Positions 1 through 53,100 of a stretch of DNA of 64,000 nt are shown in pieces (position 1 is the stretch's first letter; each line of letters begins with the position of its first letter). The position numbers were made by a program, and so were the translations under genes. Source of the DNA: Cyanophora paradoxa CCMP329 (taxonomy: Eukaryota > Plantae > Glaucophyta). The stretch covers positions 1 through 64,000 of the forward strand of contig QPMI01000048.1 of assembly GCA_004431415.1 (NCBI GenBank), given 5' to 3'. Below the pieces are notes generated by a model, which saw only the letters and a program-made list of their open reading frames with translations, did not search any database and was not told where the DNA came from.

Positions 1-3000
1 TCGCTCGCTCGCCCCACCCCTTCCAACCGATCTAAGCTGATCGCTGGGCGCGGCGGCGGCGGCGCAGGGGCCCCGCGCTCGCCTCGGCGGCCGCGGCGCT
101 GGGGCGCACCGCCGAAGACCTCCGCTCCGCCCACGCCTCTCTCTTCCACGTAGGCCCCCATTCCCCCCCCCCCCCGCTCCCGGTCTCGCCACCCGCCCTC
201 CTTCCCATTAGCCACCCTTGCGCCCACGCCTCCCTCTTCCACGTAGCCCCCCGCCCCTCCCTCCCTCCCTCCCTCCTTATCATTTCCTCGCCCCTTCCTC
301 TTCTTCTCCTCATCGCCCCTTCTTTTCTGTTCGCCCAGTCGGCGATGGCGCTGGGTACCCCCTCAGCGCCCTTCTACACATCCGACTGGCTCGAGGTACG
401 GACGAAGGGCGCGGCGATTCCTCTAGATAAGACAAGAGAATTGGCGCTTCATTCTCATCTGCGCATCTCAGGGGACCGAGTTCGTGCGGGGGGCGCCGGC
501 GGCCTGGCGCGGGGGCCTGTGGGAGGCCGGGCGGCGGGCCGCCGAGGCGGCCGCCGCGTGCGCCGCGCCGACCCCGCCGCCCTCGCCGCCTGCGCGGCCG
601 ACGGCGGCGCCGCCGCCGCCCCGGCCCTCTGGTGCGCTCCCCTCATGATAAAGGACACCTTACTCGGAACGATCTGACTTGAGCTTTGCCTTTTTCCTTA
701 GCGACGCGCTGGCGTGGGCGCTGGCGAACGCGCCGCGCCCCTTCCTCACCGCCTTCGGGCGCGAGGCGGCCGCCGACGCCGCCGACGCCCGCCGCTCCCT
801 CCTCACCGTGCGGCCTCCTCTCTTCGGCTCCGGCTTAATAATAGAAGCTCTGTTAACGTTCGAGTCGCCGAGAGTCGATTAGAGAACTCGATTAGATGAG
901 AGCGATCCCACTCGAGTGACACTGACTCGCCGAGCCCCTCCCCCTCTCTTCGGCTCCGGCGAACGGACGGGACGGGACGGAAAGCGCTGACGCCGACGCG
1001 CCCGCCCGCCCGCCCGCCCGCACGCGCAGTCGCTGCCGGCGGGCTTCCTCGCCGCCTGCGCCCTAGCCTCCGCCCTCTGCCTCGCCGTGCGTCCGGCCTG
1101 ACGCCCCCTTCCTCGCTGCGCCGAAGAACTCAAATCTCAAGATAGCGCAAAATAGAATCTACAACAAATCTTGATTCTATAAGATAGAAAATCTCAAGAT
1201 AGCGCAAAATAGAATCTACAACAAATCTTGATTCTATAAGATAGAGCGAAGGAGAGGACCACCGAGTCGCTGGCCCGCTGCCAGGCTGACCCGCCCCGCC
1301 TCCCTTGGCGCAGGCGCTGGTGGCGGGGGCGCGCGGCGCGCGGGCCGAGGCGCGGGCGCTCCTCGCCGCCCTCCCCTCCGTCCACCCCGCCGCGGTGCGT
1401 GCGACCAGATGCAGACGAAGAACAAGTGGCTATAGATAGATTGGAGGTCCTTAAATGCGGCGCCTCGCTCCAAGCGCCCATACTAGACGGCGAAGAAGAC
1501 AGGGGCGTGGGGTGCTGATCCTAGCTAACGCCGCTGGCTTCGACGCCGCTTGCCCTCGGATGCTGGAGAGCATTTAGGGCATAGAATCTCGTCCGAAGAG
1601 AATCTCGTCTGTGCTGACGCGGCCCGCCTGCCCCCCCCCTCCCCCCCCCCCCCCCCCCCCCCGCAGATACGCGCCCTTCTCCACGCCAACGGGGAGGGGG
1701 TACGCGATGCCGGCGCCCCTGGCGCCGCCTCAGGGCCGCCCTCGGGCGGGTCCTACGTGGTACGCCCGCTCCCCCTCCCCCTCCGCCCCGCCCCGCCTTT
1801 CTTCTTCCTCCTTTGGTTCTCATCGCTTTTGTTTTCTTCTTCTTCGTTCGCAGGTCCCCGCGCCCTCGTGCTCCCCCACGGGTACGCTTCCGGAGCCGAG
1901 CCCGACGTTCACCGCTGCGACGAAAGGCCGTCGCGGGGCCGCCCGCCGGGGGCCCCGGCGCGGCTCGGGCGCTGGGATCGGCTCCGCCGGGGCCGCCGCC
2001 CGACGCTACTCGGCAGCCTCCCTTGGCCCTACCACGTCCAGGTCAGATCTGATCTGATCTGAGCTTCCCTCCGCTCTGAGCTGAGCCCGTCCGGCTGAAC
2101 GGTCACTGAACCGTCCACAGGAACGATCCCCCGACCGGAGCGAGCGTCGCCGCATGGGGCAGGTCCGCAAATTCGAAATTTCAATCGTAAACGGCGCCGT
2201 TTGACTCCCCATTCAGTTCGACGAGCGTCACGACCGCCAGCAGCGCCGACAGCGCTTCCATTCAGGTACCCCGCTTCCCCCTCCTCCCAGCAGCCACTTC
2301 CGCCCCCTGTACCCCTAGCCTCACCGTACCCCCCCCCCCCCCCCAGGCCCGCCAGTCCGAGGCGGTATCCATGTCCTCGCTCAGGCCGGCCATCGCCTCG
2401 AACCCCGCCCTATCCCTCCTCACCCGTGCGCCCCGCTCGGATCTGATCTGATCTGATCCGATCTGATCTGATCCGATCTGATCTGATTTTGGATTGCAGC
2501 GGCCGTTCCCCCCCGCCGCCGCTCCCTCGGAGGTTCTTCTGTGCCCCCCGTCCCCCAGAGCTCGTCCGACGGGCCTGCGTCCTGCAACCGTGCCCCGGGT
2601 CCTCAGACGGCGAGCGCAACCGTACCCCTGCTCACGTCCCGCCGCGTCGCACTAACCGACGGACGGGGGTACAGATTCTCGTGAGGGTCGACCCGCCCGC
2701 GCGGTCCGGCCAGCGGCCCCGGCGCGCCCTCTGGACGGCTCTCCTTGCGTCCCTTCTCCTTGTTCTCCTGCTCGCCCCCGCAGCCGTCCATCTCTCCGCC
2801 GGTACGCCTCTCTGCTCGTGCATCGAGCGCCACGTACCGCGGCCGCTGAACGATTTTTTTCTCGCAGCCTCCTCGGAGCTTCGGGCGGCCCCGGCGCAGA
2901 TCGCGGCAGCCGGGCAGCGGCTCGCGGCGGCCGAGGCGCTTTTGGTCTACGCGGCCGCAGCCCTCCAGTGAGAAAAAAGATTCCGAACCTCCGCGGAGCC

Positions 3001-4356: not shown

Positions 4357-4546
4357 AAACAAGTTACAGATCAGAGTTGTAATTAAATGCCATCAGAAAG
4401 GTGCAACAAATTACAGATCAGAGTTGTAATTAAATGCCATCAGAAAGGTGCAACAAATTACAGATCAGAGTTGTAATTAAATGCCATCAGAAAGGTGCAA
4501 CAAATTACAGATCAGAGTTGTAATTAAATGCCATCAGAAAGGCGCA
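4357..4546. repeat. 47-bp AT-rich minisatellite, ~4 copies
   Basis: Unit TTACAGATCAGAGTTGTAATTAAATGCCATCAGAAAGGTGCAACAAA starts at 4364, 4411, 4458 and 4505, with no spacers. Confidence 0.95.
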
Positions 4547-5194: not shown

Positions 5195-8100
5195 ATGACG
5201 TTTAGGTTTCTTTCTCTGAACGTAGCAGGCAAACTAGATCGAGCTTTTCATGATGTATTAGGCAAATCTTATCGTTCTTTTCTCTTTGATTGCCTCCGCG
5301 ATAGTGCGCGGCATTCAGCTGTGTTCCTGCAGGAGACTCATGTTTCTTCTTCCTCATTATCCAAGCGCCTCGCGCGCGCCTGGGGATCGGCCCCTCTTTT
5401 TGGTCTCATAACCCTAGTGGTCAGGCCACTCAGGGGGTCGCCGCTCTCTTTCCTGGTGATTCCCTTTTCAAATTCGGTTGTTGACTCCAGCTGATAGTCC
5501 TCGACTTCAACTTTTCTTGTTCGAGACCAAATTTGGTCCCATTTATTTTTGCAATGTATATGCTCCTACAGATGATTCCGAGCGTCGCGGTTTCTATGAA
5601 ACTCTTCTTTATACTCTCGAGTCCGTGGTTCCTTTCGACAGCCGCCTCATCTTAGGAGGAGATTTTAATTTCCACGAGCTCCCCTCTGATGCTCCCGGCC
5701 CTAGTCGTGGAACCCCTCCCCCGACGCCTTTGAGTTGATCCGAGCTCGTTATGGCCTTTTCGATGCCGGGCCTCACACTAGAGCGTGCTTTAAAACCTGG
5801 AGCCGGCCGCGGCCGGCGGGCGGGACGATTGAGTCCCGGCTCGATTATTTTTTCCTCTCGTCCTCCCTCCGCGATTGGGCCGTCTCGCTTCGGCCGTGGA
5901 CGGCTTACTCTGCAGTCGGCGAGCCACGCAATTCTGATCATATAGGCATCTATCTCACACTTAAAGCCCCGGAATCTCTCGCCGTGGCCCCGGTCGCTGG
6001 CGCATGAACTGGGCGGCGTATGGCACATGCCCGGAATATTCTGGTTTCATTTCTACTATAATTCGTGACTGGCGCGCCGCGTGGCCATTAGTTACAGATC
6101 GCGTCCGTCGGTGGGACGCCCTCAAATCCGAGCTCCAGCGTCGTGTTCGGGCCTGGGAGCTTGATGAGAAGCGCAGGCGGAAGGACGCTTACATCTCCGC
6201 TGTTCGAGCTCTCGAGGCTCTCATCCGTCGCCACGCCGCTGGCTCTATTGATGATGTCGCTTTCCGTACACTGCGCACTTCTATGATGCGCAGCTTGAAT
6301 TCGCTTGTGTCTGACTATGCCAGACAGCATTCACGCAAAGAAATTCGTTTTGCCGCAACTCAAGATGGACGGTCTAGTAAAGCTTTTTTTGAGCATTATT
6401 TACCGGATTCTCATGCTCAGTTCACGGAGGGGCTTCGGGCCCTCGACACCGAAGGCCCAGAGGCCGCGTCGGACGACCCCCGCACTTTGCTCGAGCTTTC
6501 TTCCGCCTATTACGCTCAACTATATGACGGCGCTGCAGCTCAGGCCGTGGTTGATCGGTCGCTAGCTGAGCGGTCTGGCGTTGCCTCTCTCTATTCCCCT
6601 CACCGCCTGCTCCCTACTGAGTCTGCTGATCTTGACTCTGACTTATCGTCTGGAGAACTATTTCGTGCTTTTAAGGAGATGTCTGGCGGAGCCAAGTCTC
6701 CTGGCATCGATGGTCTCCCTGCTGAATTCTACGTTCACTTTTTTGATGAGATTGGCCCCGATTTCTGTGCTTACATCGCTGCTATGTATGAGTCTGGGCA
6801 GCCGTCCGAGTCTTTGCGGCACGTCCTCATTACTCCTATTACTAAACCGGCAACGGACCCTACTTTGATTGCAAATCGCCGCCCAATTTCTCTCTCTAAT
6901 GTCGAAGAGCGTGCAGTCGAGCGCGCCCTCTCCAACCGCTTAACGCCACTCATGTCTGGTCTTGTATCCCGCTTTCAGTCTGGCTTTATTCATCGTCGGT
7001 CCGCAGTGCACCAGGTTATGCTTGTTTATCTTCTCATGCATTACGAGGGCGGTAATCCTGCACTCGAACAGCTGTGCTTCGGATTTCTTGATTTTTCAAA
7101 AGCCTATGACCGCGTTAACTGGAGCTTCCTTTTCTGGTCGCTCGAACAGTTCGGTTTCGGGTCCCAATTTATCAAGTGGGTCCGCCTGCTCTACTCTGAT
7201 CTGCAGGGTTCTGTTCACATTAACGGCTGGACCTCCGCCCCTTTCCCCATTCGATGCGGTGTACGTCAGGGTGGCCCCTTTCGCCCTATCTATATAATTT
7301 GTGCACACACCTTTTAGCCCTTTTGATTAATGCTGATGCTCGTATACGAGGTGTCCGCTTGTCCTCTAGCTCTCTTTGCAAGGTGCTCCAGTTTGCAGAC
7401 GACACTGTTCCTTTAATCTCGTCTTTTACCGAATTGCCTTTCTGGAAAGAGTGCTTTGATAAATACTGCCGGCTCTCTGGAGCTCTTATTAATCTCGAGA
7501 AATCTAGCCTTCTTCCACTCCGCGATATCCCCGCACATGCCTGGCCTAGCGTCGAGGACTGCCCCTGGCGGCGTCTTCAGGTGACGGATCTCCCTCCCGC
7601 TGAAAAAATTCGAAAATACCTGGGCTTTCCACTAGAGCCCGATCTGTCTCGGTTCTGGCGGAAAAAGAACGCTGCTCTTGATATCCGTGTCCAGCAAGCG
7701 AAGACTTATCGCATGCCGATGCGTTCCGGCGTTCTCCTTGCCTGGGCTGTATTTATTGGGTCCCTACATTATGCTCTATATTTGCTTGACCCCCTGATGC
7801 TCAGTATTCGACATGGCAAGAGAAGCTTCGCGCTTTTGCTGGCGTGAGCGGGCAGCTTTCGAAGTATATTTCTCCTCTGCCGTGGCGTCAAGGTGGTCTC
7901 AACTGCCCGGATATTCGAGCTTTTTCGTTATCGCTGAAAATGAAGTGGGTGGCCTTGCTCGCTGACCCCTCTTGTTCGGCTCCTTGGAAGGAGTACCTCT
8001 TGAGCAAACTGGACGCTCAGCTGGCACCTTTTTCCTATGGCCCCGCCCTTGTCTCGCTCCGCCTCCCACTTGACAGACTTGACTTGCCTCCTATTTGGAA

Positions 8101-9681
8101 GCAGACTCTCTCCGAGTGGGCTCAGCGCCAGGGCGTGTGTCAACCTCGTAACTCTCCCGAAGTGTTATCCCAACCTCTTTTCTTCAATCCTCTGTTCAGT
8201 ACTCCCGGCGACGAGGTCGACTGGAGTCGCTGTGCACGGTCCGGCTTGCTGCGGGTCTGCGATATCTGGGATTGTGCTGCCCGGGGTTCCGGGCTCCAGC
8301 AGCTGCCTCCTCCGCCCTCCACTCCTTTTTCCCTAGTCTGTGCTCTGCGCTCCCGGCTACTTGGCGCCAGGTTCTCGAGGCCCCTGCACCGCCGCCTCAG
8401 CATCTCTGGTGGTCCGGACCGGACGCCTCGTTTGCTCTCCTTCGAGGCCCAAGTGGTACTTTTGTTGCCTTCCCCGTTCGCGATAACCAGATAATTCCAC
8501 GGGTGCTGGACTACGTACCGCGCGTTCCTTGCCGCCCTGCGGCTTCCCACCCTGTGGGCCTATCCTCGAGCTCCAATTCAATTCTGTCCCGTTTGCTCCC
8601 GCTGCATGTTTGCTTCAGCGCTGTCTTCCTCTCTTTTCGTCGCGGGACCCTGCCTGGCCTTTTTGTTCTTGGCGCAGGTCCTTCGGCCTTTCTTTCTCTT
8701 GATAATCTTGCGTTCACTTTCGCTCGTATGCTCCCTCTCCGCCTCTCCTCTGTTCGTCGCTTCTACTGCCTTGAGGTCCAGCGGCTTCGCGATGTGTCTA
8801 GCCACGCTCAGATGCCCGATGCTAAGTGGGGGTTTCCCGGCGCCTTGTCTCCGTCCCGTCTTCCTAATCTTGTCGTCCTTCAGTGTTTCCCGATGCTTTG
8901 GATCGATGCTCTTTACCGTTTGCATTTCAAATTGTATCGTTTGGGCGAGCAACAGTCGCCCCGCCGTCGTTTCTGTCGGGTTTGTAATGACGGATCTGCT
9001 CGCTCTCACGCGCACGTTTTCTCTGAGTGCCCGCTTTCTCGTTCGTTCTGGGATTTCATTCGTGAGCGCCTGAATTTCTGGGCTTCTACTCTTCCACCGG
9101 ATGAGCGTGAAGAGGTCGCAGTGCCTGACCTCTCTCTCTTCCACATCCTCTCGGTTCCGGATTTATCTGGACCCATTTTGCGCAGTAAAGTTAACCCCGC
9201 CTTCTGCCTTCGCTCACTTGGAGCGATCCTTGCTGGCGTATTTTCCATCCAACAGGTTGCTCGCGCTCGGTGCGATCTTGAGGAGGCTGACATTGATGCA
9301 CCTTCTTACAACCGCGCCGCGCTTGTTGCCGCCTGGGACAGAAATATGTCGTACCTCGAGTTCACCCTTCCGCAGGCTTCGGCCTTGTTGGAGGAGCGGC
9401 GCGCTCGCTTGGCTGCTGCTGACGCTGATGATCAGGCTGCCTCGGATGATGACGCACATGATTCAGAGTCTGGTACCGGTTCTCATCGTTCTAGTTCAAG
9501 CTCTGATTCTGACTCGTCCGGCGCTCCTTCTTCGGGCGGTGCTGACAACCTCGTCTCTTCGCGTGACATCGATTCTGTCCTCCGGAATCCTGCGGAGTTT
9601 GCCGTTCGTGGGAATGTCCCGTTGGGGATCCCTGGTGGTCGCCCGCCTCCTGCGCCGTCCCTCCTGCTCTGGCCCCTGTAG
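5195..9681 (+). pseudogene. LINE ORF2 (APE endonuclease + reverse transcriptase + CCHC finger), broken by >=6 frameshifts
   Basis: APE motifs: FLSLNVAG, FLQETH, NVYAPT, LGGDFN, SRLDYFF, SDH (5195-6007). RT motifs: KSPGIDGLPAEFY, RRPISLSN, QSGF, LDFSKAYDRV, GVRQG/PLSP, FADD, INLEKS, KYLG, GGLNCPD (6004-7920). Zinc finger CRVC-x8-H-x4-C at ~8974-9030. Intronless. Confidence 0.93.
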
Positions 9682-11504
9682 TGACCCTTGGGCCCATTCC
9701 TATTCCTGCTCTCGCTGCCCCTCTCGACGCTCCTTTCCCCCCATTCCCTGCGGTCCCGATCCCTGTGCTCCTTGGCCCTCTGGCCCCGCCTCTGCCTCCT
9801 CCCTCCTTACAACTTGCTGTCACGGGGCCTCTTCACTTGCCTGTTCCCCGGCAGGTCCCTGGTCATCTTGCAGCTCCATACCCCTTCTTACCTCTTCCCC
9901 TTGCTCCTCCACTTCCGCCCCTGCGAGGCCCTCTTTCTGACGTCCTCCTGGTTCAGCCCCCTCTTCAGCCCATCCTTCTTGCCCCCGCTTCTGCAACTGT
10001 GACGCTGGGCGGCACTATCTTTTGCATGCCCCTCCCGCCTCTACGTCCCGGTCTCTTTGCATCTGCATCCACTTTCCCGGATCCGCTTGCAGGCCCCCTC
10101 GCCTCCAGAGCTCGCCATCACTTCGGCCTCCCTCGCCTCCGCTCTCGATTCTCCATACCCTTCGAATAGCCGCCTTCTCTCTCCTCCTCCGCCCTCCCTC
10201 CCCCCTCGAGCTCCGGGTCCTCGGCCTCTGCCCGCTTCCGAGTGTTGGCGAGACTGTCCTCTTTTCGGTCTCCCCGTCATTCCGGCTCCCTGCTCCCCCT
10301 TCGGCGCCTCGGGTCCCATATGCGGGTCCTATCCCGCTTCCTGGCGCTCGTGAGATTCGCCGCCGGCGCCCTCGTCGGGCCCTTGCGCCCTCGAGCTCGT
10401 CTCTCTCTGCGCCGCCCATGGCCATGACCTCCGTGTCATCTGATCCGGCGCCACCCGACCTTTCTCCAGCTTCGCTGCCCTCTCTTCGGCGCCGGCAGCG
10501 ATCCCCGTCACCTGCTCGCGGCCCTTCCCCTGCCTCCGACCCTTCCTCGGCCCCCTCCTCGCCTAGGCCTCTTCCGTCTCGTCGGCCCCCGCCGCATTCC
10601 CGTCGGCGGATCTCTCGATCGACCCTGGACTCTCCGCCTGCCACTGTCTGCGGGGTACCTCCGCCGCCGTGTTCGGCGCCGGCTGTCAGTACTTTGCTCG
10701 GTAGCTCCCCCGTCGTGGCTCCTCGGGGGCCTCTTCGTCGTCGTCGTTCGCTGGGTTCCGGCTCCGGGTCAGATTTCTCGCCGGGCTTACCTTCTCCTGG
10801 CTCTGCTCCTGGGCCCTCAGCTCCGGGACCGGCTTCCCCGATCTCCTCCCGGACTCGTGGTCGTACCCGTCGCCGGCTTGCCGAGCCTGCGGCTCCTTCT
10901 ACTTCCCCCCGGCGGTTTGCCGGGCCGGACCCTCCGGCCTTTGTTCTTGATACCGGACTGCCGCCTTTGCCTTCGTCTTCTGCTTCGCTGGTCGCGATCG
11001 TATCCCGCCGGCGCCGGCGTACTTCTTCGTCTTCTAGTTTAGTTCGGTCTGGTTCGGATTCTGATCGTAGTGTTGATGCTAGAGTTAGTTTCAATACTAG
11101 CTATAGTCCTCGTGCTCGACCTGTTGTTCGCCGTCGTTTGCAGTTCGATTGCCCGCCTCGACCCTGGCCGGCTTTAGTGATTCCTTTGACTGTCCTTTTG
11201 CCTGCTCTTGATCCGCCTGTTCCGCCTCCTGTGTCCTCCTCGACCTCGTGCCGTAGCTCTGCCCTTTCGCATCGTCCTGCTTCGCCTCCGCCTCCATGTC
11301 GTCTTGTTGTTCCTCTTACTTGTCTTCTTCCTGTTATTTATCTTTCTCAATTTTGTCCCCCGCTTCTTAGTGATGTAATTCCTTCTGATATTGATGGTAT
11401 CTCTAGCTCTGGCTCTTCTTCGTGTCAGTTATCCTCTGTCCCTAGATCTGCTCGATTTATCGTCTCTTCTCGCTATCGATCTGTCTCGAGCTCTGTGTCT
11501 TTCC

Positions 11505-11798
11505 TTTTTTATTGTCGATTTTGGCTCTTTGTCTTATCTTTCTTCGTGCTCTTGTCTTAGTTATTTTGCTTTTTTGTCTTTATGCCCCCTGGGCAGCCCC
11601 CGCAGTGCTGGTGTCTAGAGACTGTGGCCGGTAATTCACCAAAAAAAAATTTTTTTATTGTCGATTTTGGCTCTTTGTCTTATCTTTCTTCGTGCTCTTG
11701 TCTTAGTTATTTTGCTTTTTTGTCTTTATGCCCCCTGGGCAGCCCCCGCAGTGCTGGTGTCTAGAGACTGTGGCCGGTAATTCACCAAAAAAAAAAAA
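11505..11798 (+). repeat. Head-to-tail duplication of the LINE 3' terminal 146 bp, each copy ending in poly(A)
   Basis: 11505-11649 (A9) and 11650-11798 (A12) are identical apart from tail length. Confidence 0.95.
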
Positions 11799-12330
11799 TC
11801 ATGATCAAGTTATATAATTAAAGGGAAATCCGAATCGGCGGGAGGCGGCGTGACGTGATCGCGTCACCGCGTCACCCGTCACTGGGCCGTCAGCAGGGCT
11901 GGGGTAACTTAGTAACGGTGGGGTTACCGACCAAGACCGATCGGCCAGGCCGCGGGCTCGGCGGCTAGCGCGCGGTGCGCCGGTGGCACCGGTGCCTAGC
12001 TAGCGCCTGCTGGGCAGCTGAGCTAAAAGAAGCAACGTTATCACAAAGCCTTGAAGCAGCATCGACTCGCTCGCACCCTGTGAGCAAAGATTGGGATCCC
12101 AGCGCGCGGGTGCGTAGTCACTGCGTACGCGTGCGAAATCGATCCTCGCGGCGACTTGCACTCTGGGGCTGACGCGGGATCTTGCCGGGGCCGGCAGCTA
12201 GCTAGTCCTGGGTGAGCTTTTGATCGCTTTCGAGGGCTGAAATTTTAAAGGCGGTACCGGTAGCACTGCGGCAGCTGCAGCCTTGAAGGAGATAGGTGCG
12301 CCGCGCGCCTTGTCTCGCTGGCCCATGCAT

Positions 12331-27380: not shown

Positions 27381-27659
27381 AACCAATAAAATTCGCGCTT
27401 GTGCGTGAATGGCTGAATTGACTTTTTGTGCCAGTGGCAATCGAGCTAAACGCGAAACTGTGTTCGTACGTCCTGTTAGTGCTTGTTAGAGGTGTCACAT
27501 TTGAAAAGTAGCCCGGCCATCGTGTTCCCTGGGGTCGAAAATGGGTACCTAGGTCCGAAAATTTTCACCTGAATCGCATTTTGAATTTACGGACAGGATA
27601 TGCACAGACCTAAGGGCCTCTCCTTTCCCCAAGGCCGATTAGAAGCGCGGACCCGGGGG

Positions 27660-28864: not shown

Positions 28865-29129
28865 GGGGGGAACCGGGATCTAATGAAAGAGTCCTAGCTA
28901 TATATAGTGGCACGCACATGCGCGAGGCAGAACGACCCCGGCCCAGTGCGCGCGGCAGGTTGAAGTGTAAAGGTAAACACAGATCATGATTGAAAAAAAT
29001 AGAAAAGGCGCGATAAGCACACGCTGCTCAAACCGAATAAAGAAAAGCCTCAATGAAAAGCCAGATTCAGCGCACACTATATGAAAGATTGTTTTGGAGC
29101 CACGCACAATATATGAAAAGCGCACAATA

Positions 29130-31039: not shown

Positions 31040-31778
31040 CGAAGGTGGCTACGAGCACAGGACGCAGGATGAGGAAGGGCGGCGACGGCTGTCAAGGTCT
31101 GTGGAGCGGAATGAGCTTTTGCCGCGCTGTAGCGGCCGTTTTATACTGGCGAGTTCAAGCTGTACTCGCGTGCGTGCGCTGAGTGCGCCCTGGCTCTAGA
31201 TTAGTGGTTGTCGGCCGGAGTGCCACGGGCGACTCCGCAATCCGGAGGTTTCGCAGAAATTCCGCTCGCGAAAACCGGTTTTTCTTCGCGCAAAATCGTG
31301 CCGGGAGTTCGATTCACTTATTCAGTTGATTGCCTTTTCGCGGGCTAGCCTGCTTTGGTGTTCTGGTTTTTTAAAGTGGTTTTTTTAAACCAGCCGCAGG
31401 ATGAAGTGGTCTGGTTTTTAAGCGCCGCTGCACTCGACGCCGGCCATCAGTACTGGAGAGCTAGAAATATTTAGTGGGCTGCGTATACGTATTTATAGTA
31501 CTAAAAGTTTTTGGGCGATCTACTAAATATTTCTCGCGTGTTTCCAAATATCGGCACTGGAGTCTTCTCGCTTATAATCGGGAGTCTATATCTTCGCGAA
31601 CCGTCCAGAATGGTCTAAACGGACGAGAAACGAAAGCGACGCCAGTGAACAGCGCGTCTGGGGCGATGTATCAGTGTACGATACATTGGTGTTTTATGCA
31701 TGTGAGTTCTGGCATTCACGGAAAATTGTTGCGATGCCGTGCCATGCTTTTGCTGCGCATGCAGTCGGTCGCGCACGA

Positions 31779-41800: not shown

Positions 41801-44800
41801 GTTATCGAAAGCGTGTACGTGGAAGAGGCGACAGCGCCTGAAACCAAATTCGATATCATTGAATTCGTCAACGGCATTGAGTTCTAATTATAAATCCACG
41901 CCGTGAACGCACCAGTCCAGTTGGCGAACGAGACGAGCGTCGGGGCCAGCTTCCCCTTTCCCACGACCAAGGTCGTGAGGGGGTCGACGGGCGACGGGAG
42001 CCCCGTCGCGGTGCGCGTGACGGCGACCGTGCACGTGAACGTCGATCCGCGGGGTACCTGATCGCGATCGAGCGTCGCGATCGCCGATCGCGAGCGCGTT
42101 GAGAGAGGAGAAGCCAAACTTGAAAGCCAAGCGGCACACTATGAATGTGCCGTTGACCGTGTCGTTGCCGCAGTTCGCTTTCAAGACGTAGCCCGGGTCT
42201 GACCGCAAAAGAAGCCGCGAATACTTATTAATTAATGCAGACGCAGATAGGTGTTCAAGGCAGCGGCACCCGTGAAGGCCTGCAGGAAGTTTCCGCCCTT
42301 GGACGTGTAGCCCTTCGAGAAGGCGCAGCCGAGGGCGAGGCCGTCCCGCGCCGGGTCGAGCAGGGCGGGGTCCTCGACTGTGACGCGGAAGGCGTGCGCC
42401 GTGGCGGCCCCCTCCGCGCTCGCCAGCGTCGGCTGCGCGCAGGCGTGTTCTTGTCACAGTGTGCGTCAGAATTCGTCCGGCGGACAATTCAAAGAGGAGC
42501 CTTAAGCGAAGCTTAAGCGATGAAGATGAAGCTCGATTTCGGAGGACCTGAGAGACTGCCAGGCCGGTGGTGTTGGCTGTCAGGCGGCAGCTCGGGAAGG
42601 GAAGGGCGTTGTTGATGAGGCGGGGGAAGAGGACGCAGTGGAAGGTGAAGCCGACCGCGGCAGTCTCCGTTGTGAGGAGGCAGCTGACGACGGAGGACTG
42701 GTCGGGGCCTGCGCGCGCGTGCAAGGCGGATGTCGTCACTGATCCGAAAGAGAATGAGCGGGGCGGAATTTGAAGGTACGTGCATGGGGAGGCGACGAGA
42801 ACACGTGTGTTCAATCCCCAGTTGGGGTACGTGACGGGGCCCAGGCCGCTGCCGCCGCCCCCGGAGACGAAGACCCACGTGTCTTTTCGGGGCGGATTCA
42901 GCGGCGTCAGGAGCAGTTCGGGCGGCTGCGTGAGGCAGCACAAACTCGCCTTTGACCTGCGGCCGGTTTCGGAAAAGCTGAAGTTAAGCGGACGCGGAAC
43001 GGAAAGTGGGAGCTGCAGCTGGCCGCGGAGGAGTTCGGACCAGGTACTGGGTCGGGGCAACGCCCCAGAGAAGGTTGGCGGCCCCCGCCGGCACATTGAC
43101 CTGCGGGTGCGGGCGCGGATGATCATGAGGGGCCAGGCTGCATATTGCATAGCGTCGAGAAGCTTAAGGACGAGAGCGGGGGCGCTCACGGGTGTCGTCC
43201 CTGCATACTCCCACAAGTTCGTCTGCACGGCGCGTCGGACGTCTCTCATGATCAGAGTTATAATTAATTATAAGCACGTGCACGACCGGCGGCCGTGGGC
43301 GGGACCGGCCGCGGGTCGGCGCGCGCACCTCTGTATCGTACGCCCACATCTCCGCGAGCTGCGAGGGCAACCGTGAGCTGTGCCGCGGGCACTTGCTGCG
43401 CATTATAATTAAATGAAAGGCGCCTGGTAGTACAACGCATTGGAGTCGTAGCCCTGGCCACCGTACACTGCGCGAGCGCAGCGTTTTCGCCAACGCCGCG
43501 CTTTGGCTCTCACCGCGCAGCGAAAGATCCAGAGGACGGCAGCGCACTGTAAAACTTCGTTCCGTACGTCGCGTATATGGAACCGTAGCGCCCCCAGGGG
43601 CCCCCTGCAGGCGCCACATGGACTACGGTGTACACGTACGTGTCTGCCGAAGCGTGGTCATGAGGCCTATATAGCTAGGGTATCGATAACGCGAGCGCTT
43701 TTGGTAAATCATATTTAGATTTCCGCTCTTAAGCTTGGGCCGTACCCATGTTGAGCTTCCCAAGGGTCCAGTCGACGACAGGCCCGCCGCCGGCGTTCAT
43801 GGACCAGTGGTTCGCGACGCCTCCGTACATCCTGTTCGACGCGACGCCGACGCCCGGCCGATGCCAACGTCAGCGCGAGATATACAAGCATACTCATGAG
43901 CACGGAGACTCGAGCTCTGAGATCTAGATCTAGAGCGCCGAGCTTACACAGATAAACGCCGACCACATCGTATCAATCATCGATAGACATTTTATCAAGG
44001 AAGCCTTAAGCTCGATGCGATGCTTATCAGATATCGATAGACATTTTATCGAGGGAGGTTTCATTATATTAATCTCTCGTGCGGGGCGGCCGCGGGGCGG
44101 GGCGGGGCGCGCGCGCCAGATGTTGCGGCCGATGACGGCTCCTGAGGACATGTATGCGGCCGGCATCGGCGCGCCGGAGGTCGCCTGCGTCCACAGGGCG
44201 CCCGCCTGCGCGTCGAAGATGCCGAGGCCCCCCACGAGGCCGGCCAGGTTCCAGCCGCCTGCGCGCGCGCGGCTCGACGCGTACGTACGCGGGGCGAGGG
44301 CCGCGGACGGGTCGGGTGCATGACTGGATGTCCATGGCTGGCTCACGCGCCAGGTGCGGGCGCAGGGCCTGTATAGCTTGCAATTGCTAGCTATAGGGAC
44401 GGCCGACGCGCACCGACGACGAGGACGTACCGGTCGTCCTTCACAAAGGCGTTCGCGTCGTACCGCACCTGCGATCGCGGTAGCGATCGCGGAATCGGAA
44501 TCGGAATCGGTTTAAATTTATCTCGCGCGGGGCCGTATACGTAGAGCTGACGCCGTCCGTCGGTCGGCGGGGGCGCGATGTATCCGTATATATGTGTATA
44601 TATAGCATTATGTAGCTACAGGCAGCTGCACGCGCAGCTGCAGCGGTATCGTGTACTTATAATTATTATATCGGTATCTTGGCGAGACAGGAGTAGCAAT
44701 ATAGCGCGAGGAAATTAAATCAAAGCTCTAGCTTTCTTATAAACGCACGGGCGTGGATCCCGAGGCGGAAGCCGTCGCCCACGCCGTCGTCGCGGGATCG

Positions 44801-46163
44801 TACCTGCCGGTCCGATCGCGAGCCCGAAGGCACGGCCGCGATATCGAGCGGCTGGCGCCGCGCGCGCGCACATGCGCACCGGTACACAACGAACGACGCG
44901 CCGGCAACGAGCGCGCCGCTGCCCATGGCCATCCGTTCAGAGGCCGATTGCAGACCCCGGCCCGGGATACAAAAATAGCGCACCCGAAGGCGTAGTATTT
45001 GCCGCGGACGACGGCCGCCGGCGAGTTGAGCGTCGGGAGCATCCAGGGCGCCGCCTGCGCCGGCGGGTTCGAGGTGCCCCGCACGGTGCCGTCCGACCAG
45101 GGCGACGCCGCGACGGCTGCAGAGCCCGGCCGTGGGGTCAAGCGGGGCCGGTCCAGATCGCGGGGCGGAGCGCGATCGTCGAATCCATTTCAAGAGTCTA
45201 CAGCGAAAAGAAAACGCGGGCCGCACTGAAATTAATCGAGACGAAAGAGGGGTGCGGCCTGCGCGAATGCGAAGATGAATTCGAATGATATGAATCCAAG
45301 AAAGAGGGCGAGACTTCACTGTACCCCGCGAAGGCGACGTCACCGATGACGCCCCCCGCCAGCCGGTCCGAGACCGGAGGCGCCACGCCCGTGTTCGGGA
45401 CGTGCACGAGGAAGAGCGTGCCCGTGCACGTGCCGGCCTTGAGGGCCCGCCGCGGTTGCTGGCCATATGCATGGGACCGGCCGGGGGAGCTCGCGGCGCT
45501 CAGGCTAGCGCTCGAGCCCGCGGCCGGATCCGGAGGGCCGAGGGCGGCGCCCAACTTGTCGCTCCCAGCTGCACCTGCATGCGCAGCAGCAGATGCAGAT
45601 GCAGCTGCAGCTGAAGTGTCCAAAGGCGGGTGGGTACCCGGGGCGACCTCGCCTTGGCCTGGCCCCCCATGGCCATACGCGTCGACTGCCCGGGGGCGGG
45701 ACGCCGCCGCCGGCACTGCGGCGCGGCCGCGGGCCCGGGGTCAGCGATCGGAGGCGGCGCGGCGCGCGGGCGGGCGCATGCGCAGTCGCGAGGATGAGCC
45801 GGGGCCCGGGGTAACAGGTCTAGATCGATAGCTAAATCTTCTTAGGGCGACACAGCTGCGCATGCAGATCTAGATCTAGAGTTCCAGGGGGATGCATATG
45901 CGCGAAATAGCTGTGCGGACCGGCCCACGCCTGTCGTTTTAGCTATAGCTATTTAGCTGTAGCCATAGGGCCGGCGGCGGCGATCTCGGAAAGGGCGCAC
46001 CCGTCGCCAATAGGAGGACCGCGACCGAGACAGCGAGAGCAAGGCTACGCAGCTGCAGCCACAGCTGCAAGCGCGGCGCGCGCGTCTGCCGTCCGCGCCG
46101 GCATGGAAAGACGTGGCCGCTGCTGGCAGATCCGGGATCCGCAAAGACCGTTAACGTGCGCAT
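32801..46163 (-). CDS. Large cell-surface protein: signal/anchor - Kelch-like propeller - tandem Cys-containing Ig-like repeats - IPT/TIG - multi-TM (TRP-C-like) C-terminus; many exons
   Basis: N-terminus MRTLTVF..LALAVSVAVLLLAT. Kelch-like: AAVVRGKYYAFG, RYDPATTAW, AFVKDDRYVLVVG, SGAVIGRNIW, EMWAYDTE. Ig-like: VPRGSTFTCTV, AVGFTFHCVL, FTGSVVTCTF, VSASVSCTF, VQAGETLRCGV. IPT: SIASVSPNTTDAGGGDNVTV. TM region: YNALFEEFE, MLELFKLLLCCFLVAL, LVFLRPFINRWCN, ELVAFLAVLLL, VAVFASCLLLVLVVLL. Stop near 32801 is tentative. Confidence 0.7.
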
Positions 46164-47130
46164 GTCACAGTGTGCTGCGTGCATCCCTCGTACTCGAGCT
46201 CATGCCATGATGGACTAGCGATTTGCTCCGGGGATCCCGCGGCTGCGAGCCGTTTCCTACTAAAAAGGCTAATACTCGGCGTGCACGTGGATATGCGCAG
46301 CTGCAGGCAGCGCAGCTGGCCGTGGCCGATTGGGATCGGAGCTGGCGTGTCTGCAGCTGCGCGGCCATATGCATAAAGGATGCTCAGCTAACGAAGCTGG
46401 CGCCGCGCGTCGCGCGCGCGCGCGCGGCGATGCGCCTGCAGGCTGCAGCTAACCGACGGTGATCATGAGGCCGCGGCCGCTGAGGCTGCTAAAGCTAGCT
46501 ATAGCTGGCTAGGGCTGCTCTTCCTTCAGGCTGATGCGGCGCGCGGCGGCGCCGCGGCGCATGCGCTTCCGAGTTCAGCGGGCGGGGCTGCACCCGGTAC
46601 GGGTGCACCGTGCGGGCCGTTGCGGCACTGCGGCACTGCGCTACCGCTGCTCATGCAAGCCTTGATATCGATCATGAAGCAAGTTGAAGGGCGCCGGCGC
46701 CCGGCGCTGCAGCTGCTGCTGCTAGCAGGAGCTCAATGCTTAGCTCATTCAGGGATCGGGGTACTTGCACATACGCGTAAAAAAGCTTCATTGGCCAAAT
46801 ATAATACGCCGTTTCATTGGCAGAGAGACTGAAGCTTGGGGTACAGCCGAATTCATTGCCGCCCCGCCTCGCCGCGCCCGCATCAGCATGCAGTGCCATG
46901 CATACAATTACGTTGTGCATGTTCATCGTGCACTACGGTAGCCTAGTAGACCCCGCGCATGTCAACCGTCTTCCACGAGCTCATCGAGACGTGGGGGTAC
47001 GATGCGAGCTCAAAATTAGGGGGTACAGCGCCGAAGCTAACCAAGGAAGCGCGCCCGAGGTGAGCCCCAAGGAGCGCGATAGCGTCATTGCATGCGGTCG
47101 TAGAGTCTGTGCAGCGCGCACCTTCCTCCG
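46164..47130. promoter_or_regulatory. Putative bidirectional promoter (~970 bp); paralogue at 58051-58987
   Basis: Lies between divergent start codons at 46163 (-) and 47131 (+); rich in CAGCTG and GCATGC. Confidence 0.5.
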
Positions 47131-50100
47131 ATGGGCTGCGGGTCGTCAAGCTCCGCCGCGCAAAGCGCCAGCTACGCAGCCGACAAGGCCGGGCAGCCGG
47201 GCCAGCAGGTCCCTACCGCATCCGCAAATGCAAGCGGTGCATTAGACCAGGAGACGAAGCAGGCGTCCGCTGGCGGCTCTCAGGATGCACAGCCGAACTC
47301 AGAACCCCAACCGCAGCCAGCGAACGGAGAGCAGAAGGTGCGATGCGTTCGCCTTGCATCGCGCTTAAGGGCGCATGCAGTGCGGGCGCTCCGCCTGACC
47401 GGACCCCCAGCCGCAGTCGGAGGCCAATGCGGAGCGGCGGGAGCTGCCGCCCATCCAGCTGCGGGGGGCGCCGCCGCGCGCGTTCAGCGGCGCGTCCGTG
47501 GGATCGGTCGCGATCGACCTCACGCGGACGCCCTCCCTTCTGAGCGCCGCCCAGTCGCCGGGCGCGTCCCAGCACGGCGCGGCCCAGCCGGCGGCTGCGT
47601 CGGACGCAGCGACGGCGACGGCGCAGCCCGCGGGGAACGCAGCGTCGACCGTCTCCGAGCGCCGCGTTGAGCCCGTCTCGTCGATGACGGCGGCGGCGGC
47701 GCCACCGCCCGCCGTGACGCAGGGCCCGCCCTCACCGGCCGCCGCCTCCAAGCAACCGGCCCTCCCGCCTTCGCCCAAGGCGGCGGCGCCGCCCTCGCCC
47801 AAGACCCTCGGGCCCCCCTCGCCGCGGGGGATGCTGGCGCCGCCCTCGCCGGCGGGCGACCAGATGCACCCGGACACGGCCTCGGGCGTCTCGTCGGGCC
47901 CCCCCTCGGCCCGCCAGTACATCGACCTCCGCCACCGCCTGCGCTCCAGCGACCGATTCGTCAGGGGTACGCGTTCATTGGGCTCTGGCCGCCCCCGCCC
48001 CGCCCCGCTCGCCCGCCGCCGCCGCCGATCGAAAGTTTTCGCCGCAGTCTTCCTCTCCTCTACGTTCGCTGACATGGGCCCCGAACGGGAGGCGATCCAG
48101 AAGAGCGCTGTACCCCGCCTGCGGGGCGCCCTCGCCGCCCGCGGCCTCTTCTTCTCGTGCGTCGACCTCCGATGGGTGCGCACACGTACCCCCCTCCCAC
48201 CTCCCAATCGCGGCCCCTTCCACCCCCGCTGAGCTCGGTACCCGGCGCAGGGCGTGACGGAGGAGCAGGTCAAGAACGGGACGGTGCGCCGTACCCCTGC
48301 CCCTTCTTTCCCCCTCTTCCCCTGTTCTGATCCGGTACCCCCCCCCCCCCCCCCGAAGGTCTCTCGCATTTGCCTGCAAGAGGTCGAGCGCTGCACGTAT
48401 TTCCTCGCTTTTCTGAAGGCTCGTTCGCGTACCCCCTCCCCCTTCTTGCGCCCCCCGTACCCCTAATCTCTTCCTCCCCCCTCCGCCAGTCCCGCTACGG
48501 GTGGCACGCCCCCCCGGGCGCCGGCTCCGACGACCCCTTCGTGAAGTGCGACCGTACCCCGCCGAAACCTGCGATCCCGTACCCCCCTCGTGAATGCGTA
48601 CCCCCCAGGACCCTCGAGACGGCCGCGGAGGAGTTCCCCTTCCTCGTTAAGTATGCGGACCGCTCCGTCACGGTACCCCCTCGCAGCCCCCGTACCGCGT
48701 ACCCCCCCTCCGTGTTGAAGTACCCTGCCCCTGCGCAGGAGCACGAGATCCGATTGGGCGCCTTCGTGGACCCGCTGGTGCGTGCGAGACGGGGGATCGA
48801 GTCCTGGCGTGCCCCTTTCGGCCGCTCTGACTGACATCGCCGCAGGGCCGCGAGCGGGTGCGGCGTGACGTCGCGCGCTTCTGGTTCGCTTCTGCGGCCC
48901 TCTCTGGCGGTGCGGGCGGGCGCCGTACCCCATCTTCTTCCTCCCGTAATCGTGTACCCCCGCAGACTCGGGGGAGGGCGAGCGGGCCGCCAAGATGCTC
49001 CAGTCGCTCAAGAGCGAGGCGCGCTCCCCCCCCCTCTTCTCTTCCCCCCGCCCCTTACGCCTGTACCCCCCGCAGATCGCGGGGGCGGGGTTCGGGCTGG
49101 GGGAGTACGCGTCGCCGGCGGGCCTCGCGGGGGCCATCCACGACGCCGTCCTCGAGGTAAGCGGGGCCGGGGTGGAGGGATGGACAGGGGGTACGCGATA
49201 GACACGAGGGGGAAGCCTGCCGGCCAGAGTGGGATGGCTACCGGGCCAGCCGCGCCCCCGCGGACGGAGCGTAGGCGGTCCGTAGGCCACAACAGAAGCA
49301 CGCGAAAGAAAGAGCGATGGGGTCCGCGGCTCGGGCGGGCGGCGCGCCTCGGCCTTCTCCTCGTCCCGCTGACGCTCTCTCCTCTTCTCCTCGGGCAGAT
49401 GGTGGCGCGGGATTTTCCGGCGGTGCCAGCGGCCTCGTGGATCGAGCGCGAGCTCTCCGTCCACGCTGCCTTCTCCGCCTCCCGCAGGCCCGCCCCCTCC
49501 TCGCCGCCTCTTCTCCTCGGCTCCTCTTAAGCTGCCCGCAGGCGTCTGTACGTGCCGGAGGCGGGGCGGATGCGGGCGCTGGACGCGTACGCCGAGGCCT
49601 CGGGGCCGGAGCTCATGCTCGTCACCGGGCCCGACGGCGTCGGCAAGAGCGGTGCGCGACAGCGAGAGAGAAGAAGCAGAGGGGAGGAGAGACGCGTGGA
49701 AGCGAGCGGCCTCGGTGTGCTCTCCGCTGACTCCCGCCGGCAGCGCTGCTGGCGAACTGGGGCGGGGAGCGGGCGCGGCGGGCCGGCGGGGGCCCCGGCA
49801 CCGGCCCCGGGGCCGACCGGGAGCTCGTCCTCGTCCACCACATCGGCAGCGGGCAGCAGTCCGCCCGCGCCGCCAGCCTCGCACGGTGCCCCTCCCCCTC
49901 TCCCCCCGCCCTTCGGATCTATAGAACCGACAGGAGACCATAGACTTCATCCGAGTTGATAAGCCGCCACGCGGCCTCCTTTTCTCCTCTCCATTCGCCC
50001 TCTCCCGTCCTCTCCCGTCCCTCCCTCCCTCACCGGCCTCCTCTCCTTCTCCTCCATTCGTCCCGTCCTCTCCCGTCCCGCCCCTCCCTAGATTTGATTC

Positions 50101-53100
50101 GAGTCGATATGAGCCCTACCCCCCCGTAGGAGCGCGAGCCCTACCATAGATTTGATTCGAGTCGATATGCCGCCACACGGCCTCCTTCTTTCCCCCTCCT
50201 CCTCTATTCGTCCAGTCCTCTCCCGTCCCGCCCGCCCCTCCCTCCCTCACCGGCGGTCGGCGCGCAGGCGGGTCTACGAGGAGCTGCGCGCCAAGCTGCC
50301 CCAGGCCGAGCTCCCCGAGCTGGTAGTCTGATCTCTCTGATCTCTCTCTTTTCACTCTCTCTCGTTCGGTTCTCACGGCTCTCGCCACCTTCCCGCCAGG
50401 TCCTCGACGGGGGGGAGAAGGAACTCATGCCCCGGTGCGCGCGGCGCCGTACCCCTCCACCAACCCCCCTCCCCTCCCTCCTCTCCGCCCTCCTCCACGC
50501 CCTCCTCCCCGACCTCCTCTCACCCCCCTTCAGGTTCGCGGAGTGGCTGGGGGCGCTGGGCGCCGAGCTGCCCTCCCGCTGCCTCCTCGTCCTCGACGGC
50601 CTCGATCAGGTGGCGCCCCGATGCCTTTCTTTAAGCTTTAAGCTTTAGCTCTCTTAAGCCCGTCTATTACGCTTTCCCTCCCGCTCTTTGTCTCCTCTCT
50701 CTTAAGCTCTTTCTATGAAGCTTTCTTCTTTCTCGGCCCCTCTCCTCTTCCATTGAGCGAGAAAGAAAGAAGCTTCATAGAAAGAGCTCGGTCGAGAAAT
50801 GGAAGAGGAGAGGGGCTTCTTTCTTTGGAAGAAGGAGAGCCTTTTCTGCATTGAGCTCTCCTCTTCCAAAGGAGGCCTCATCAATACCGTCTTTTTCTCT
50901 TCTGATACCCCCTCTCCCCCTCTCCCTCCCCCTCTCCCCCCCCCTCCTCGCCCCCCCCCCCCCCCCCCCCACTCCCCCTAATCCCGTCGTCCCCTCAGCT
51001 GCTGGACCGGGAGGGCGCCCAGGGCCTGGACTGGCTCCCCGCCGGCCTCGCCGGGCCCCGCCTCCGCGTCGTCCTCTCCTGCGGCCCCGGTGCGCCCGGC
51101 TCCCAAGATTAGATCCCTAAGATTAGATCCCTAAGATCGGCTAGGGCGTGGTGCGCCCGGCTCCTAAGATTAGATCCCGGCACCGCCGATCTAATTTCCA
51201 ATGCTCCTGCTCCATCGACCCCGGCTCCTAAGATTAGATCCCTGAGATTAGGTCCCGGCACCGCCGATCTAATTTCCAATGCTCCTGCTCCATCGACGGC
51301 GCGGCGCGGCGCCGCTGACGCGGGGCGGGGCGGGGCGGGCGGGCGGGGCGACAGGCACGCGCTGCAGGCGGCGGAGGGCCGCGCCCACGTCCGCCTCGAC
51401 GTCACCCCCTCACCGACGTCCAGGCCCGCCCCGCCCCCCGCCCCCGCCCCGCCCCGCCCTTCAGAACCACCTTCAAATATTCCCATCACCGACCCGCCCG
51501 CCCCGCCCCGCCCACTAGAACCGCGTTACGTTGCCTCGCCCCGCCATCCCCCCCCCCCCCCCCCCCCCCCCCCCGCGCCCGCCGCCCCGCGCCCCGCCGC
51601 CCTCCGAACGAGCGCGCGCCCGGGCTGAGGCGGCGGGGCCCGGGGGGCAGGCGGAGGCGCTCGTGCGGATGGACCTCGACTACAGCGGCAAGTCCCTCTC
51701 AAAGGTACCCCCCCTCCTTCCCCCCCCCCGGCTCCCCGTGACGCGACGGTGGCACAGGAGCACCTGGGAAGGGTCCTGGCCTCGCCGCAGTGCCGCACGC
51801 CCCTCTTCGTCCTCGTCGTGCGCCCCATCCTAGAATGAACTCATCTGGGCAATTCCCATCTGGCCATTCGAGAATGGGGCGTTCATTCTAGAGTTCCACC
51901 CTAGGAATCGTCCATCCCGCCGTCCTCGTCGTGCGCCCCATCTTAGGATGAACTAGGCGGCCTTTCCACCGCTTGCTTCGCCCGTCCCGCCCCGCCCCGC
52001 CCGCCCTTGCTCCATCCCGCCCGCCCGGCCCTAAACTAGCCCCGCCTGGCCCCGCCCGGACCCGAACCCCCCCCCTTCCCCCCCCCCCCTCCTTTCGCCC
52101 GGCCCGACTCCGCCCCGCCCCCCTCGGCAGCTGCTGGAGGAGCTGCGGGCGGGGGCGGTGCACGGGACGCTGGGGCAGCGGCTCGATGAGGGCCTCGCCT
52201 GCACCTCCGCCGCCGACCTCTTCGCCCTCGTCGTGCGCCCCGCGCCCGCCCGCCCGTCTAAGTTGAAGGAAACGAGCGTCTTCGATTGCGATTAACATTC
52301 CTTAAAGCGAGCTTCGTGCGCCTATCTAAGGTTTACTTTTCTCTTGCTCGAGCTTTTTTTGCCTTGGGCCATCGGACTTTTCGAGGAGCGATGCTTCGAT
52401 CCGCCGGCTTGCCCCAGCGGCCTTCTTCGGCGCGCCTGAACCAACGGCCCTCCCGGCGCAGATCAAGCGGCTGGAGGGGGCGCACGGGGCGGAGCTGGTT
52501 CGGGGCGCCCTGGCGGCGGTCGCCTGCTCCCGGCGGGGCCTCGCCGAGGGCGAGATCCAGGGCCTCCTCCAGGTCCGGCCCGCCGGGTTATCAGGCGCTC
52601 TTAGGCTTCGTTGTTAGACGTTTATAATCAATTAGAGGTAGAGAGGTAGACCCTCTTCTCTATCTAGCTGCAGTTTCGGCTTCTATCTAGGGCGAGATAT
52701 CAGGCGCTATTAGACTTCAGGCGCTATTAGGGCGTCCTGCAGGCCCGGCCGGCCCCGCCCCGCCCCGCCCCGCCCGTTACTGAGCGCCATCAACTTCATT
52801 AGACGGCCTGCGTCCTTCCTTTCTTTCTTCGCAGCTAATCTAGTTCTTTAGTCACATAGGACGCACATCGCGTAACGTTGTCCTTCGTCTCACTTCCCCG
52901 TCCCCGCAGGCGGCCGGCGTGCCGCACAGCGGTCTCGCGTGGGCCGAGTTCCTTGCCGCCTCCCAGGTCCCCCCCTCCCCCTCCCCCTCCCCGGCCTCGG
53001 CCTCCCCCGCACCTGCTGACCCTCCCCGCCCCGCCCCCCGGCAGTCCCTCCTCTCGGAGCGTGACTCGCTGCTCGGCTTCTCCCACCGCTACGCCGAAGA

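Follow-up and report, generated by a model that had tools for sequence, protein, structure and literature searches.

Repeated 5′ splice sites within introns of Cyanophora paradoxa are probably scars of DNA break repair filtered by selection

Roughly 1 in 20 introns in a 64,000-nt window of contig tig00000189 of Cyanophora paradoxa (the whole stretch of DNA analysed) carries, further into the intron, a second copy of sequence that crosses or begins at its own 5′ splice site, or donor. These donor echoes are probably scars left by error-prone repair of DNA breaks, a process that would act throughout non-coding DNA and be filtered by selection, with no need for targeting of donors. At a threshold of at least 18 bits, donor copies are present in 9 of the 178 introns of a curated set, and none is expected by chance (1421 cross-intron controls, maximum 16.6 bits); weaker echoes of 10–18 bits show no excess over chance at donors or acceptors. 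The gene models behind this set are our own and are backed by RNA only at intron 35974–36037, which lies in the single spliced contig among the RNA contigs over 33000–38990; no contig there crosses the donor echo. Read with their first donors, gene A has a stop-free frame of 1315 codons and gene F one of 2146 codons.

The nine donor echoes are as follows.

Donor echo 1, 128–159 and 221–252, plus strand, first gene: 30/32 identical; real donor 150, echo donor 243; 22 exon nt copied; C-rich filler of 61 nt without a local template.
Donor echo 2, 13946–13972 and 14068–14094, plus strand, calpain-patatin gene: 25/27 identical; donor 13966, echo donor 14088; filler of 95 nt, GC 0.38, built from internal direct repeats.
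Donor echo 3, 18872–19148, plus strand: GC donor 18878, echo donor 19072; 16/16 core; only 6 exon bases copied, with gapped homology running about 90 nt into the intron.
Donor echo 4, 21555–21890, plus strand: GT donor 21570; GC echo copies at 21821 and 21851, each 20/23 identical, the echo itself being tandem-duplicated by 30 nt; filler with a 15-nt inverted repeat (fold z −3.7).
Donor echo 5, 34228–34411, minus strand: donor 34384, echo donor 34238; 37/38 identical, core pair 34/34; 27 exon nt copied; filler of 108 nt without a local template, ending in a CAG directly before the copy.
Donor echo 6, 51089–51297, plus strand: donor 51090, echo donor 51151; 28/29 identical; left copy begins only 1 nt before the donor; additional 57-nt intronic duplication in the same intron.
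Donor echo 7, 51808–51954, plus strand: donor 51818, echo donor 51931; 32/34 identical; filler with inverted copies of the donor region of 11 and 8 nt.
Donor echo 8, 52559–52754, plus strand: GT donor 52573, GC echo donor 52743; 19/22 identical; filler with a 10-nt exon piece and repeats of the intron start.
Donor echo 9, 29053–29155, minus strand: 25/25 identical; first copy begins at donor 29155, its repeat lies at 29077; the model of this intron is uncertain.

The first eight had been listed in the original prediction, and their positions and identities (25/26, 25/27, 16/16, 20/23 twice, 34/34, 28/29, 32/34 and 19/22) are all correct; under our gene models these pairs fall in four genes and every one begins at or crosses a donor. 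Echo 9 is absent from that list. The copies are 25–90 nt long, 85–100% identical, on the same strand and 61–296 nt apart. As had been proposed, the introns are lengthened: all nine echo introns measure 132–417 nt, against a median of 82 nt in the curated set.

The DNA between the copies points to repair synthesis. Fillers are 29–268 nt long, and local templating exceeds that of shuffled sequences in 7 of 9 (p ≤ 0.02), with no local template in those at donors 150 and 34384. The proposed origin in repair or template switching is thus backed by locally templated fillers, and break repair with templated filler is supported as a reading of these sequences. Local patching had been predicted generally, inverted copies included; it holds for the same proportion, 7 of 9, and inverted copies are found in only 3 of 9. 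Likewise, AT-richness holds for 7 of 9 fillers relative to introns (filler GC 0.36–0.72, versus 0.61 for all introns). The description as fold-back filler was overstated, as inverted patches are significant in 3 of 9 and a stable fold-back is present in 1 of 9. Short palindromes are no richer in fillers than in other non-coding DNA and therefore do not distinguish them.

If the filler were instead a mobile element with a preference for donors (a transposon, a 5′-truncated LINE or an Introner), the copies would be its target-site duplications. Short LINE-tail insertions with target duplications of 6 and 10 nt do lie in a local intron (20420–20714), which lends this reading some plausibility. 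However, the fillers form no sequence family within the window: they share no common sequence of at least 12 nt with each other and, simple repeats excepted, have no match of at least 14 nt in the rest of the window. This lack of shared sequence speaks against a transposon, as originally argued. None ends in poly(A/T), terminal repeats and poly(A) tails are lacking, and the copies are variable in length at 25–90 nt, unlike the LINE duplications here. Within the window, filler comparison and copy lengths largely refute the mobile-element reading, which we consider very improbable. The LINE tail, used as a query against metagenome contigs, gave no match. A candidate intron gain was also noted at 21027.

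The duplications could also have been created by long-read assembly, and the assembly does contain 1-nt indels in its duplicated region. This reading has a negligible probability. The filler at 34236–34407 is present without differences in short-read contigs from DNA runs of two studies (2024 and 2012), and the 34-nt unit of echo 5 has a depth of 191, versus 77–101 in its flanks, corresponding to two copies. The duplication is therefore present in raw DNA reads, as predicted, in the stretch checked (34228–34411), where an artefact is ruled out directly; for 13946–21890 it is ruled out indirectly, sampled words of 13500–22500 being 95–96% present in twenty DNA runs. Copies that have diverged from each other and unique fillers also argue against an artefact.

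Donor echoes are part of a broader class. Duplications of the same type lying wholly inside introns, on which the original prediction was silent, outnumber those at donors: 14 further events are purely intronic. An acceptor copy is found in 1 of 178 introns.

18083–18219, plus strand: intronic duplication with filler, an example of the commoner class.
817/943, 1132/1189, 43979/44033, 49937/50143, 53105/53228, 61758/61801 and 62468/62603: further intronic duplications.
35761–35803, minus strand: acceptor-spanning duplication, 18/21 identical, period 22, the sole such case.

Use of the upstream AG in the acceptor-spanning duplication would add 21 nt, in frame and stop-free. A second acceptor match, in the intron at 62377, was dropped as its identity ends 5 nt short of the AG.

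The outermost events (n = 24) comprise 7 that span the donor, 2 that start at it, 14 intronic and 1 that spans the acceptor; where an intron held several events the donor-spanning one was chosen, a choice that favors donor targeting. The data reject a model in which events fall evenly along the entire intron (KS p = 0.004) and show a 5′ bias (Wilcoxon p = 0.001), whereas even placement outside the last 28 nt is compatible with them (KS p = 0.22–0.24). This protected-zone model, which was picked after the data were seen and rests on only 24 events, predicts 5.2–8.1 donor-spanning events, and 7 are seen (P(≥7) = 0.25–0.79). The branch-point motif CTGAC lies at a median distance of 24 nt from the intron end; a branch-point-like motif is present in only 98 of the 178 real introns. 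In introns longer than 140 nt after event removal, donor events (5 of 12) are slightly above expectation.

These results bear on the claim that the process is focused on 5′ splice sites. Under such a scheme, breaks or template switches would form preferentially at donors, for example owing to transcription, splicing itself, R-loops or the nucleosome edges found where exons end, and repair would re-copy exon ends, grow introns from the 5′ end and occasionally yield micro-exons or introns; the in-frame 27-nt copy at 34265–34239 might be such a new micro-exon. The excess of donor over acceptor cases (9 versus 1, p = 0.02) is as this scheme would have it, as are the position of the copies, the left one being in 18 of 24 events closer to the donor than the right one to the acceptor, and a duplication density slightly higher in introns (1.42 per kb) than in intergenic DNA (0.81 per kb; exons, 0.11 per kb). 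The density difference is not significant, however (p = 0.10), intronic events exceed donor events, and no donor excess emerges even with event choice biased toward donors. Because the counts are reproduced by random placement outside the last ~28 nt, the branch point–AG stretch, no donor targeting is needed. In this small sample the predicted donor enrichment stands over acceptors and disappears over the intron interior once selection is allowed for, and the claimed focus is so far not supported. We regard donor-focused mutagenesis, in its general form as in the version driven by transcription or splicing, as unlikely.

In the preferred reading, repair without targeting, a staggered break or template switch would duplicate 15–90 nt, and brief bouts of synthesis that copy nearby DNA, in direct or inverted orientation, would fill the space between the two copies. 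Events would land anywhere and then be filtered by selection, a cause we infer from the observed pattern. Exonic events would be removed, as would most of those across the acceptor or between branch point and AG, which may separate the halves of the 3′ signal or place a new AG first. Donor-crossing copies would be harmless, as the first copy stays on the intact exon and is used; the second donor would stay silent and decay, leaving a longer intron. A weak point of this explanation is that preference for the upstream donor is known from mammals, whereas the host is a short-intron alga.

Use of the second donor would bring stops in all three frames and a frameshift in 7 of 9 cases, so the echo copies are probably silent. 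Echo donor scores fall inside the real-donor range in 5 of 9 and are equal to or lower than those of the first donor in 8 of 9, and two echo donors have changed from GT to GC. A protein search with 33687–34097 (minus strand), a contiguous stretch that reads in frame through one 75-nt intron, found no transcript-derived fragments crossing the echo junction, and words of the calpain-patatin gene are absent from all three RNA runs. A functional role, as two-step splicing (recursive splicing or a stwintron), a micro-exon or an alternative donor, would be consistent with individual cases: at 34384 a CAG directly precedes the 27-nt in-frame copy, the copy at 52573 supplies 12 nt in frame together with a CAG|GC junction, use of the second donor at 150 would add 93 nt free of stops, and five echo donors score like real ones. 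The AGs at 34384 and 52573, however, have no preceding branch-point-like motif, an argument tempered by how few real introns have a detectable one, and in most other echoes an AG before the regenerated donor is absent or out of frame. An AG at one in-frame position or another is also expected by chance. Together with the decay of echo donors and a paralogue without two of the echoes, this makes a functional role improbable.

The ages of the events can be compared through a tandem paralogue.

41574–53444 and 53445 onward: tandem duplication of 11.87 kb, source of the paralogue comparison.
62780–62965, plus strand: paralogous intron without donor echo, counterpart of echo 6, also without the 57-nt intronic duplication.
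63453–63559, plus strand: paralogous intron without donor echo, counterpart of echo 7, 107 nt versus 313 nt.

Exons of the paralogues differ by about 3%, mainly at silent positions (33 silent, 10 replacement). Absence from the tandem paralogue suggests that echoes 6 and 7 arose recently, although both paralogous introns are altered in other ways too, with unreadable breakpoints, and may instead have lost their copies. In echo 8 one base agrees with the paralogue's exon against its own exon, and echo 8 thus predates that exon change. This comparison bears out the prediction that the events differ in age. Differences between copies have no clear direction. Three echoes belong to a gene copy now cut off at 53444, on which selection may have ceased to act.

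Published figures of 25,831 genes and 9.2 introns per gene (PMC6704402) give roughly 238,000 introns. Extrapolated from this one window, a typical rate of 5% would mean about 12,000 introns with twin donors that form a graded series in age and strength. Such a set would be a natural experiment on the choice that a spliceosome working on short introns makes between identical 5′ sites, and on the lengthening of introns by repair scars. Donor targeting, if it held genome-wide, would tie splicing to the location of DNA breaks, which would be new. We found no published description of donor echoes in glaucophytes.

The closest parallel is with the "doublets" of Pace et al. 2009 (PMC2671141, citing Thomas et al. 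2004), repair duplications with filler that in the human set take in intron splice sites: near-identical, short, closely linked copies, filler at the junction, templates in nearby DNA and an empty site in a relative are common to both. In Cyanophora the density is far higher, at about 1.4 per kb of intron, the copies fall short of the 162 bp that the human set averages, and introns are only ~80 nt long, so that a large share of copies overlaps the donor. Direct and inverted templated insertions are attributed to polymerase theta-mediated or synthesis-dependent end joining in a review (PMC7407515), which also summarizes rice repair insertions (Vaughn and Bennetzen 2014). The direct and inverted patches seen here, copied from within ~200 nt of the junction, resemble these products, whereas the Cyanophora fillers are long and often re-duplicated, two having no local source. 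The duplicated flanks of a presumed staggered break also recall the tandem duplications that Pol alpha-primase and NHEJ produce at breaks with 3′ overhangs (PMC8355091). In human F7 intron 7 (PMC1557585) a repeat unit likewise crosses the exon–intron boundary and leaves identical donors downstream, of which only the most upstream is used, as would presumably hold for the first donor in Cyanophora; there a single locus has 37-bp minisatellite units arranged head to tail, in contrast to single copies with filler in many introns. Introns gained through tandem duplication or break repair (PMC3443670) and stwintrons (PMC8469720, PMC7138796) also have direct repeats that flank inserted DNA at splice signals, but in those cases a new or nested intron is made, whereas the Cyanophora copy sits inside an existing one. 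The type of mutation is thus already known, and it is its density in the Cyanophora genome that is unusual.

Gene models for the window, which is 64% GC and densely packed with introns, were built with a simple predictor and curated by hand, giving 178 introns (median length 82 nt) from seven genes or gene copies. The published Cyanophora paradoxa assembly, which is probably haploid, comprises 99.94 Mb in 712 contigs and 25,831 genes, with introns that average 86 bp and number 9.2 per gene (PMC6704402). Two of our models run without stops across 1315 and 2146 codons when frames are checked on joined exons, single exons used as Pfam queries give weak matches to calpain, DUF4062, and AAA_16, and exactly one intron is confirmed, to the base, by one RNA contig. 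GC donors occur in 23 of the 178 modelled introns (13%), a share that a preference of the models for GT may have lowered; the donor consensus is G-T/C-G-C-G-C-C. The main features are as follows.

4358–4546, AT-rich tandem repeat of four nearly identical 47-nt units, upstream of the LINE-like element
5400–11800, broken LINE-like element in which visual inspection shows motifs of an endonuclease and a reverse transcriptase; its tail is duplicated exactly at 11505–11795
12424–22069, single 1315-codon frame with a calpain protease domain (Pfam), which has an Ala/Gly-rich insert close to its start, and a patatin-like domain (by motif only)
23170–24397, small gene, one exon 100% identical to the 250-residue Cyanophora paradoxa protein tig00000189_g14307.t1 (EukProt)
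24960–31040, repeated region that looks like a mobile element (24960–25970 resembles 25976–27380), adjoining an intron-containing minus-strand gene that ends in a Cys/His-rich segment
33040–45458, minus strand, gene of >2140 codons and ~60 introns with low-level transcription; it encodes kelch-like repeats, an extended region of extracellular type, and, close to the end, several hydrophobic stretches
41574–64000, tandem duplication of 11.87 kb in which a DUF4062-NACHT-type gene is truncated at 53444 (left copy) and the large minus-strand gene at 53445 (right copy)

The eight donor pairs of the original prediction are all found in the window as described. In an anchored scan, the best downstream copy of each intron's own donor junction and the best upstream copy of its own acceptor junction were scored relative to a Markov background and to other introns comparable in length. 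Of the 178 introns, nine contain a donor copy of at least 18 bits, where none is expected and the control maximum is 16.6, and one contains a true acceptor copy. The additional donor echo (a second copy of the exon end and 5′ splice site within the intron, named by its real donor) is 29155 on the minus strand, where the intron model is uncertain. Raw reads had been proposed as a check, and at 34228–34411 the duplication is present in raw DNA data: the filler between the copies is unchanged in two runs of different years and read depth over the 34-nt unit is double that of its flanks, which leaves an assembly artefact a negligible prospect.

The fillers are 29–268 nt long, with a GC content of 0.36–0.72 compared with 0.61 for introns. 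Each is unique and most are locally templated: in seven of nine, coverage by local matches of at least 8 nt is far above that of shuffles, and for those at 150 and 34384 no local source sequence was found. The predicted patching from local sequence is thus borne out in these seven, whereas the fold-back character is limited to inverted copies in three of the nine and a stable fold-back in one (z −3.7). As had also been predicted, the fillers have nothing in common with one another beyond 10–11 nt simple motifs, and, simple repeats apart, no stretch of 14 nt or longer in common with other parts of the window. Insertion of mobile elements is therefore very improbable, the more so as the echoes look unlike the two short copies of the LINE-like element's tail in intron 20420–20714 (20450–20660), which lie in opposite orientation with target duplications of 10 nt and 6 nt. 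Perfect 6–10 nt palindromes in introns and intergenic DNA are about 1.5–4 times as frequent as in dinucleotide shuffles, with no excess in exons.

Use of the second donor would introduce stops in all frames and a frame shift in seven of nine cases, so that in intact genes the first donor would have to make the protein. The echo scores equal to or below the real donor in eight of nine, and two echoes have changed from GT to GC. Among identical donors in mammals the most upstream one is used (PMC1557585); by analogy, echo copies would be harmless. Functional two-step splicing or micro-exons could draw on two echoes able to yield in-frame micro-exons (27 nt at 34265–34239 and 12 nt at 52731–52742), but a branch motif was looked for upstream of both AGs and is absent, and we consider this reading improbable. 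In intron 20258–20358 (20241–20380), 10 nt from the end of the upstream exon are repeated, minus the donor, and the start of the downstream exon recurs as an interrupted copy that lacks the AG. At 20999–21160, 22 nt around modelled donor 21027 recur (18/22) ~116 nt on, within an apparent exon; judging from sequence, the 95-nt intron 21027–21121 may possibly stem from duplication plus filler in a once continuous exon, as intron gain in progress.

An unanchored scan reveals many duplications of the same kind without contact to any splice site. They are spread across non-coding DNA and nearly absent at acceptors and in exons (1.42 per kb in introns, 0.81 in intergenic DNA, and 0.11 in exons; intron versus intergenic p = 0.10). 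For a placement test we took one outermost event per intron, preferring a donor-spanning one if there were several. The 24 events comprise 7 donor-spanning, 2 starting at the donor, 14 interior, and 1 acceptor-spanning. Their 5′ bias is real (Wilcoxon p = 0.001) and uniform placement is rejected (KS p = 0.004), as mutagenesis focused on donors would predict. However, the 3′ signal is long, with the branch motif CTGAC at a median distance of 24 nt upstream of the intron end, and random placement that leaves the branch point-to-AG stretch intact, a model picked after seeing the data and applied to a small test, expects 5.2–8.1 donor-spanning and 0–0.9 acceptor-spanning copies, against 7 and 1 observed; under it, the distribution of event positions is compatible with uniformity (KS p = 0.22–0.24). 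In ~80-nt introns, a 30-nt duplication reaches the donor by chance in about a quarter of cases. The proposed excess at donors hence holds relative to acceptors but disappears relative to selection-allowed random placement; with a small test and a post hoc model, donor targeting becomes unnecessary rather than excluded, and we regard it as unlikely. Both acceptor copies are consistent with selection: the upstream AG of the single case, if used, adds 21 nt in frame, and in a second, at 2978/3036 in an uncurated part of the first gene, the upstream copy has lost its AG.

The tandem duplication bears on age. Exons of the two DUF4062-NACHT-type gene copies differ by ~3% (33 silent versus 10 non-silent differences), and most introns are nearly identical, with four long ones heavily rebuilt. 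Echoes 51090 and 51818 are absent from the paralogue, most simply because they formed once the copies had separated, whereas echo 52573 agrees at one base with the paralogue's exon and differs from its own, and so predates that exon change. These comparisons support repeated events of different age, as proposed, some of them recent. Identity between the tandem copies is a mosaic (99.6–100% over 41574–44000, about 87% over 50000–52500), and both NACHT copies contain 1-nt homopolymer indels that may be assembly errors. Between 44900–46400 and 56900–58300, 11 of about 46 indels are 6 nt, at least five of these being three bases, their reverse complement, and the same three bases. The paralogous introns 50610–50998 and 62377–62688 share a position and differ in most of their content, the left having nested inverted repeats of 12–19 nt and the right a 54-nt direct duplication.

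We think it probable that the echoes are repair-type duplications arising across non-coding DNA and kept or removed by selection. Staggered breaks or template switches would start them, followed by gap filling and repeated templated synthesis of the sort reported for end joining (PMC7407515, PMC8355091); selection would remove copies at acceptors, and the second donor would stay silent. The echoes are at most candidates for stwintrons or for intron gain (PMC3443670), and within the window they fail the tests for transposon or Introner insertion. This analysis contributes donor, interior, and acceptor counts set against a placement model, a check in raw DNA data, and a comparison with the paralogue. 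The echoes are real, and they are a dense, new example of an already known type: they behave like repair-mediated short duplications (PMC2671141) and show each of their features that was tested. Human duplications of this type likewise copy splice sites.
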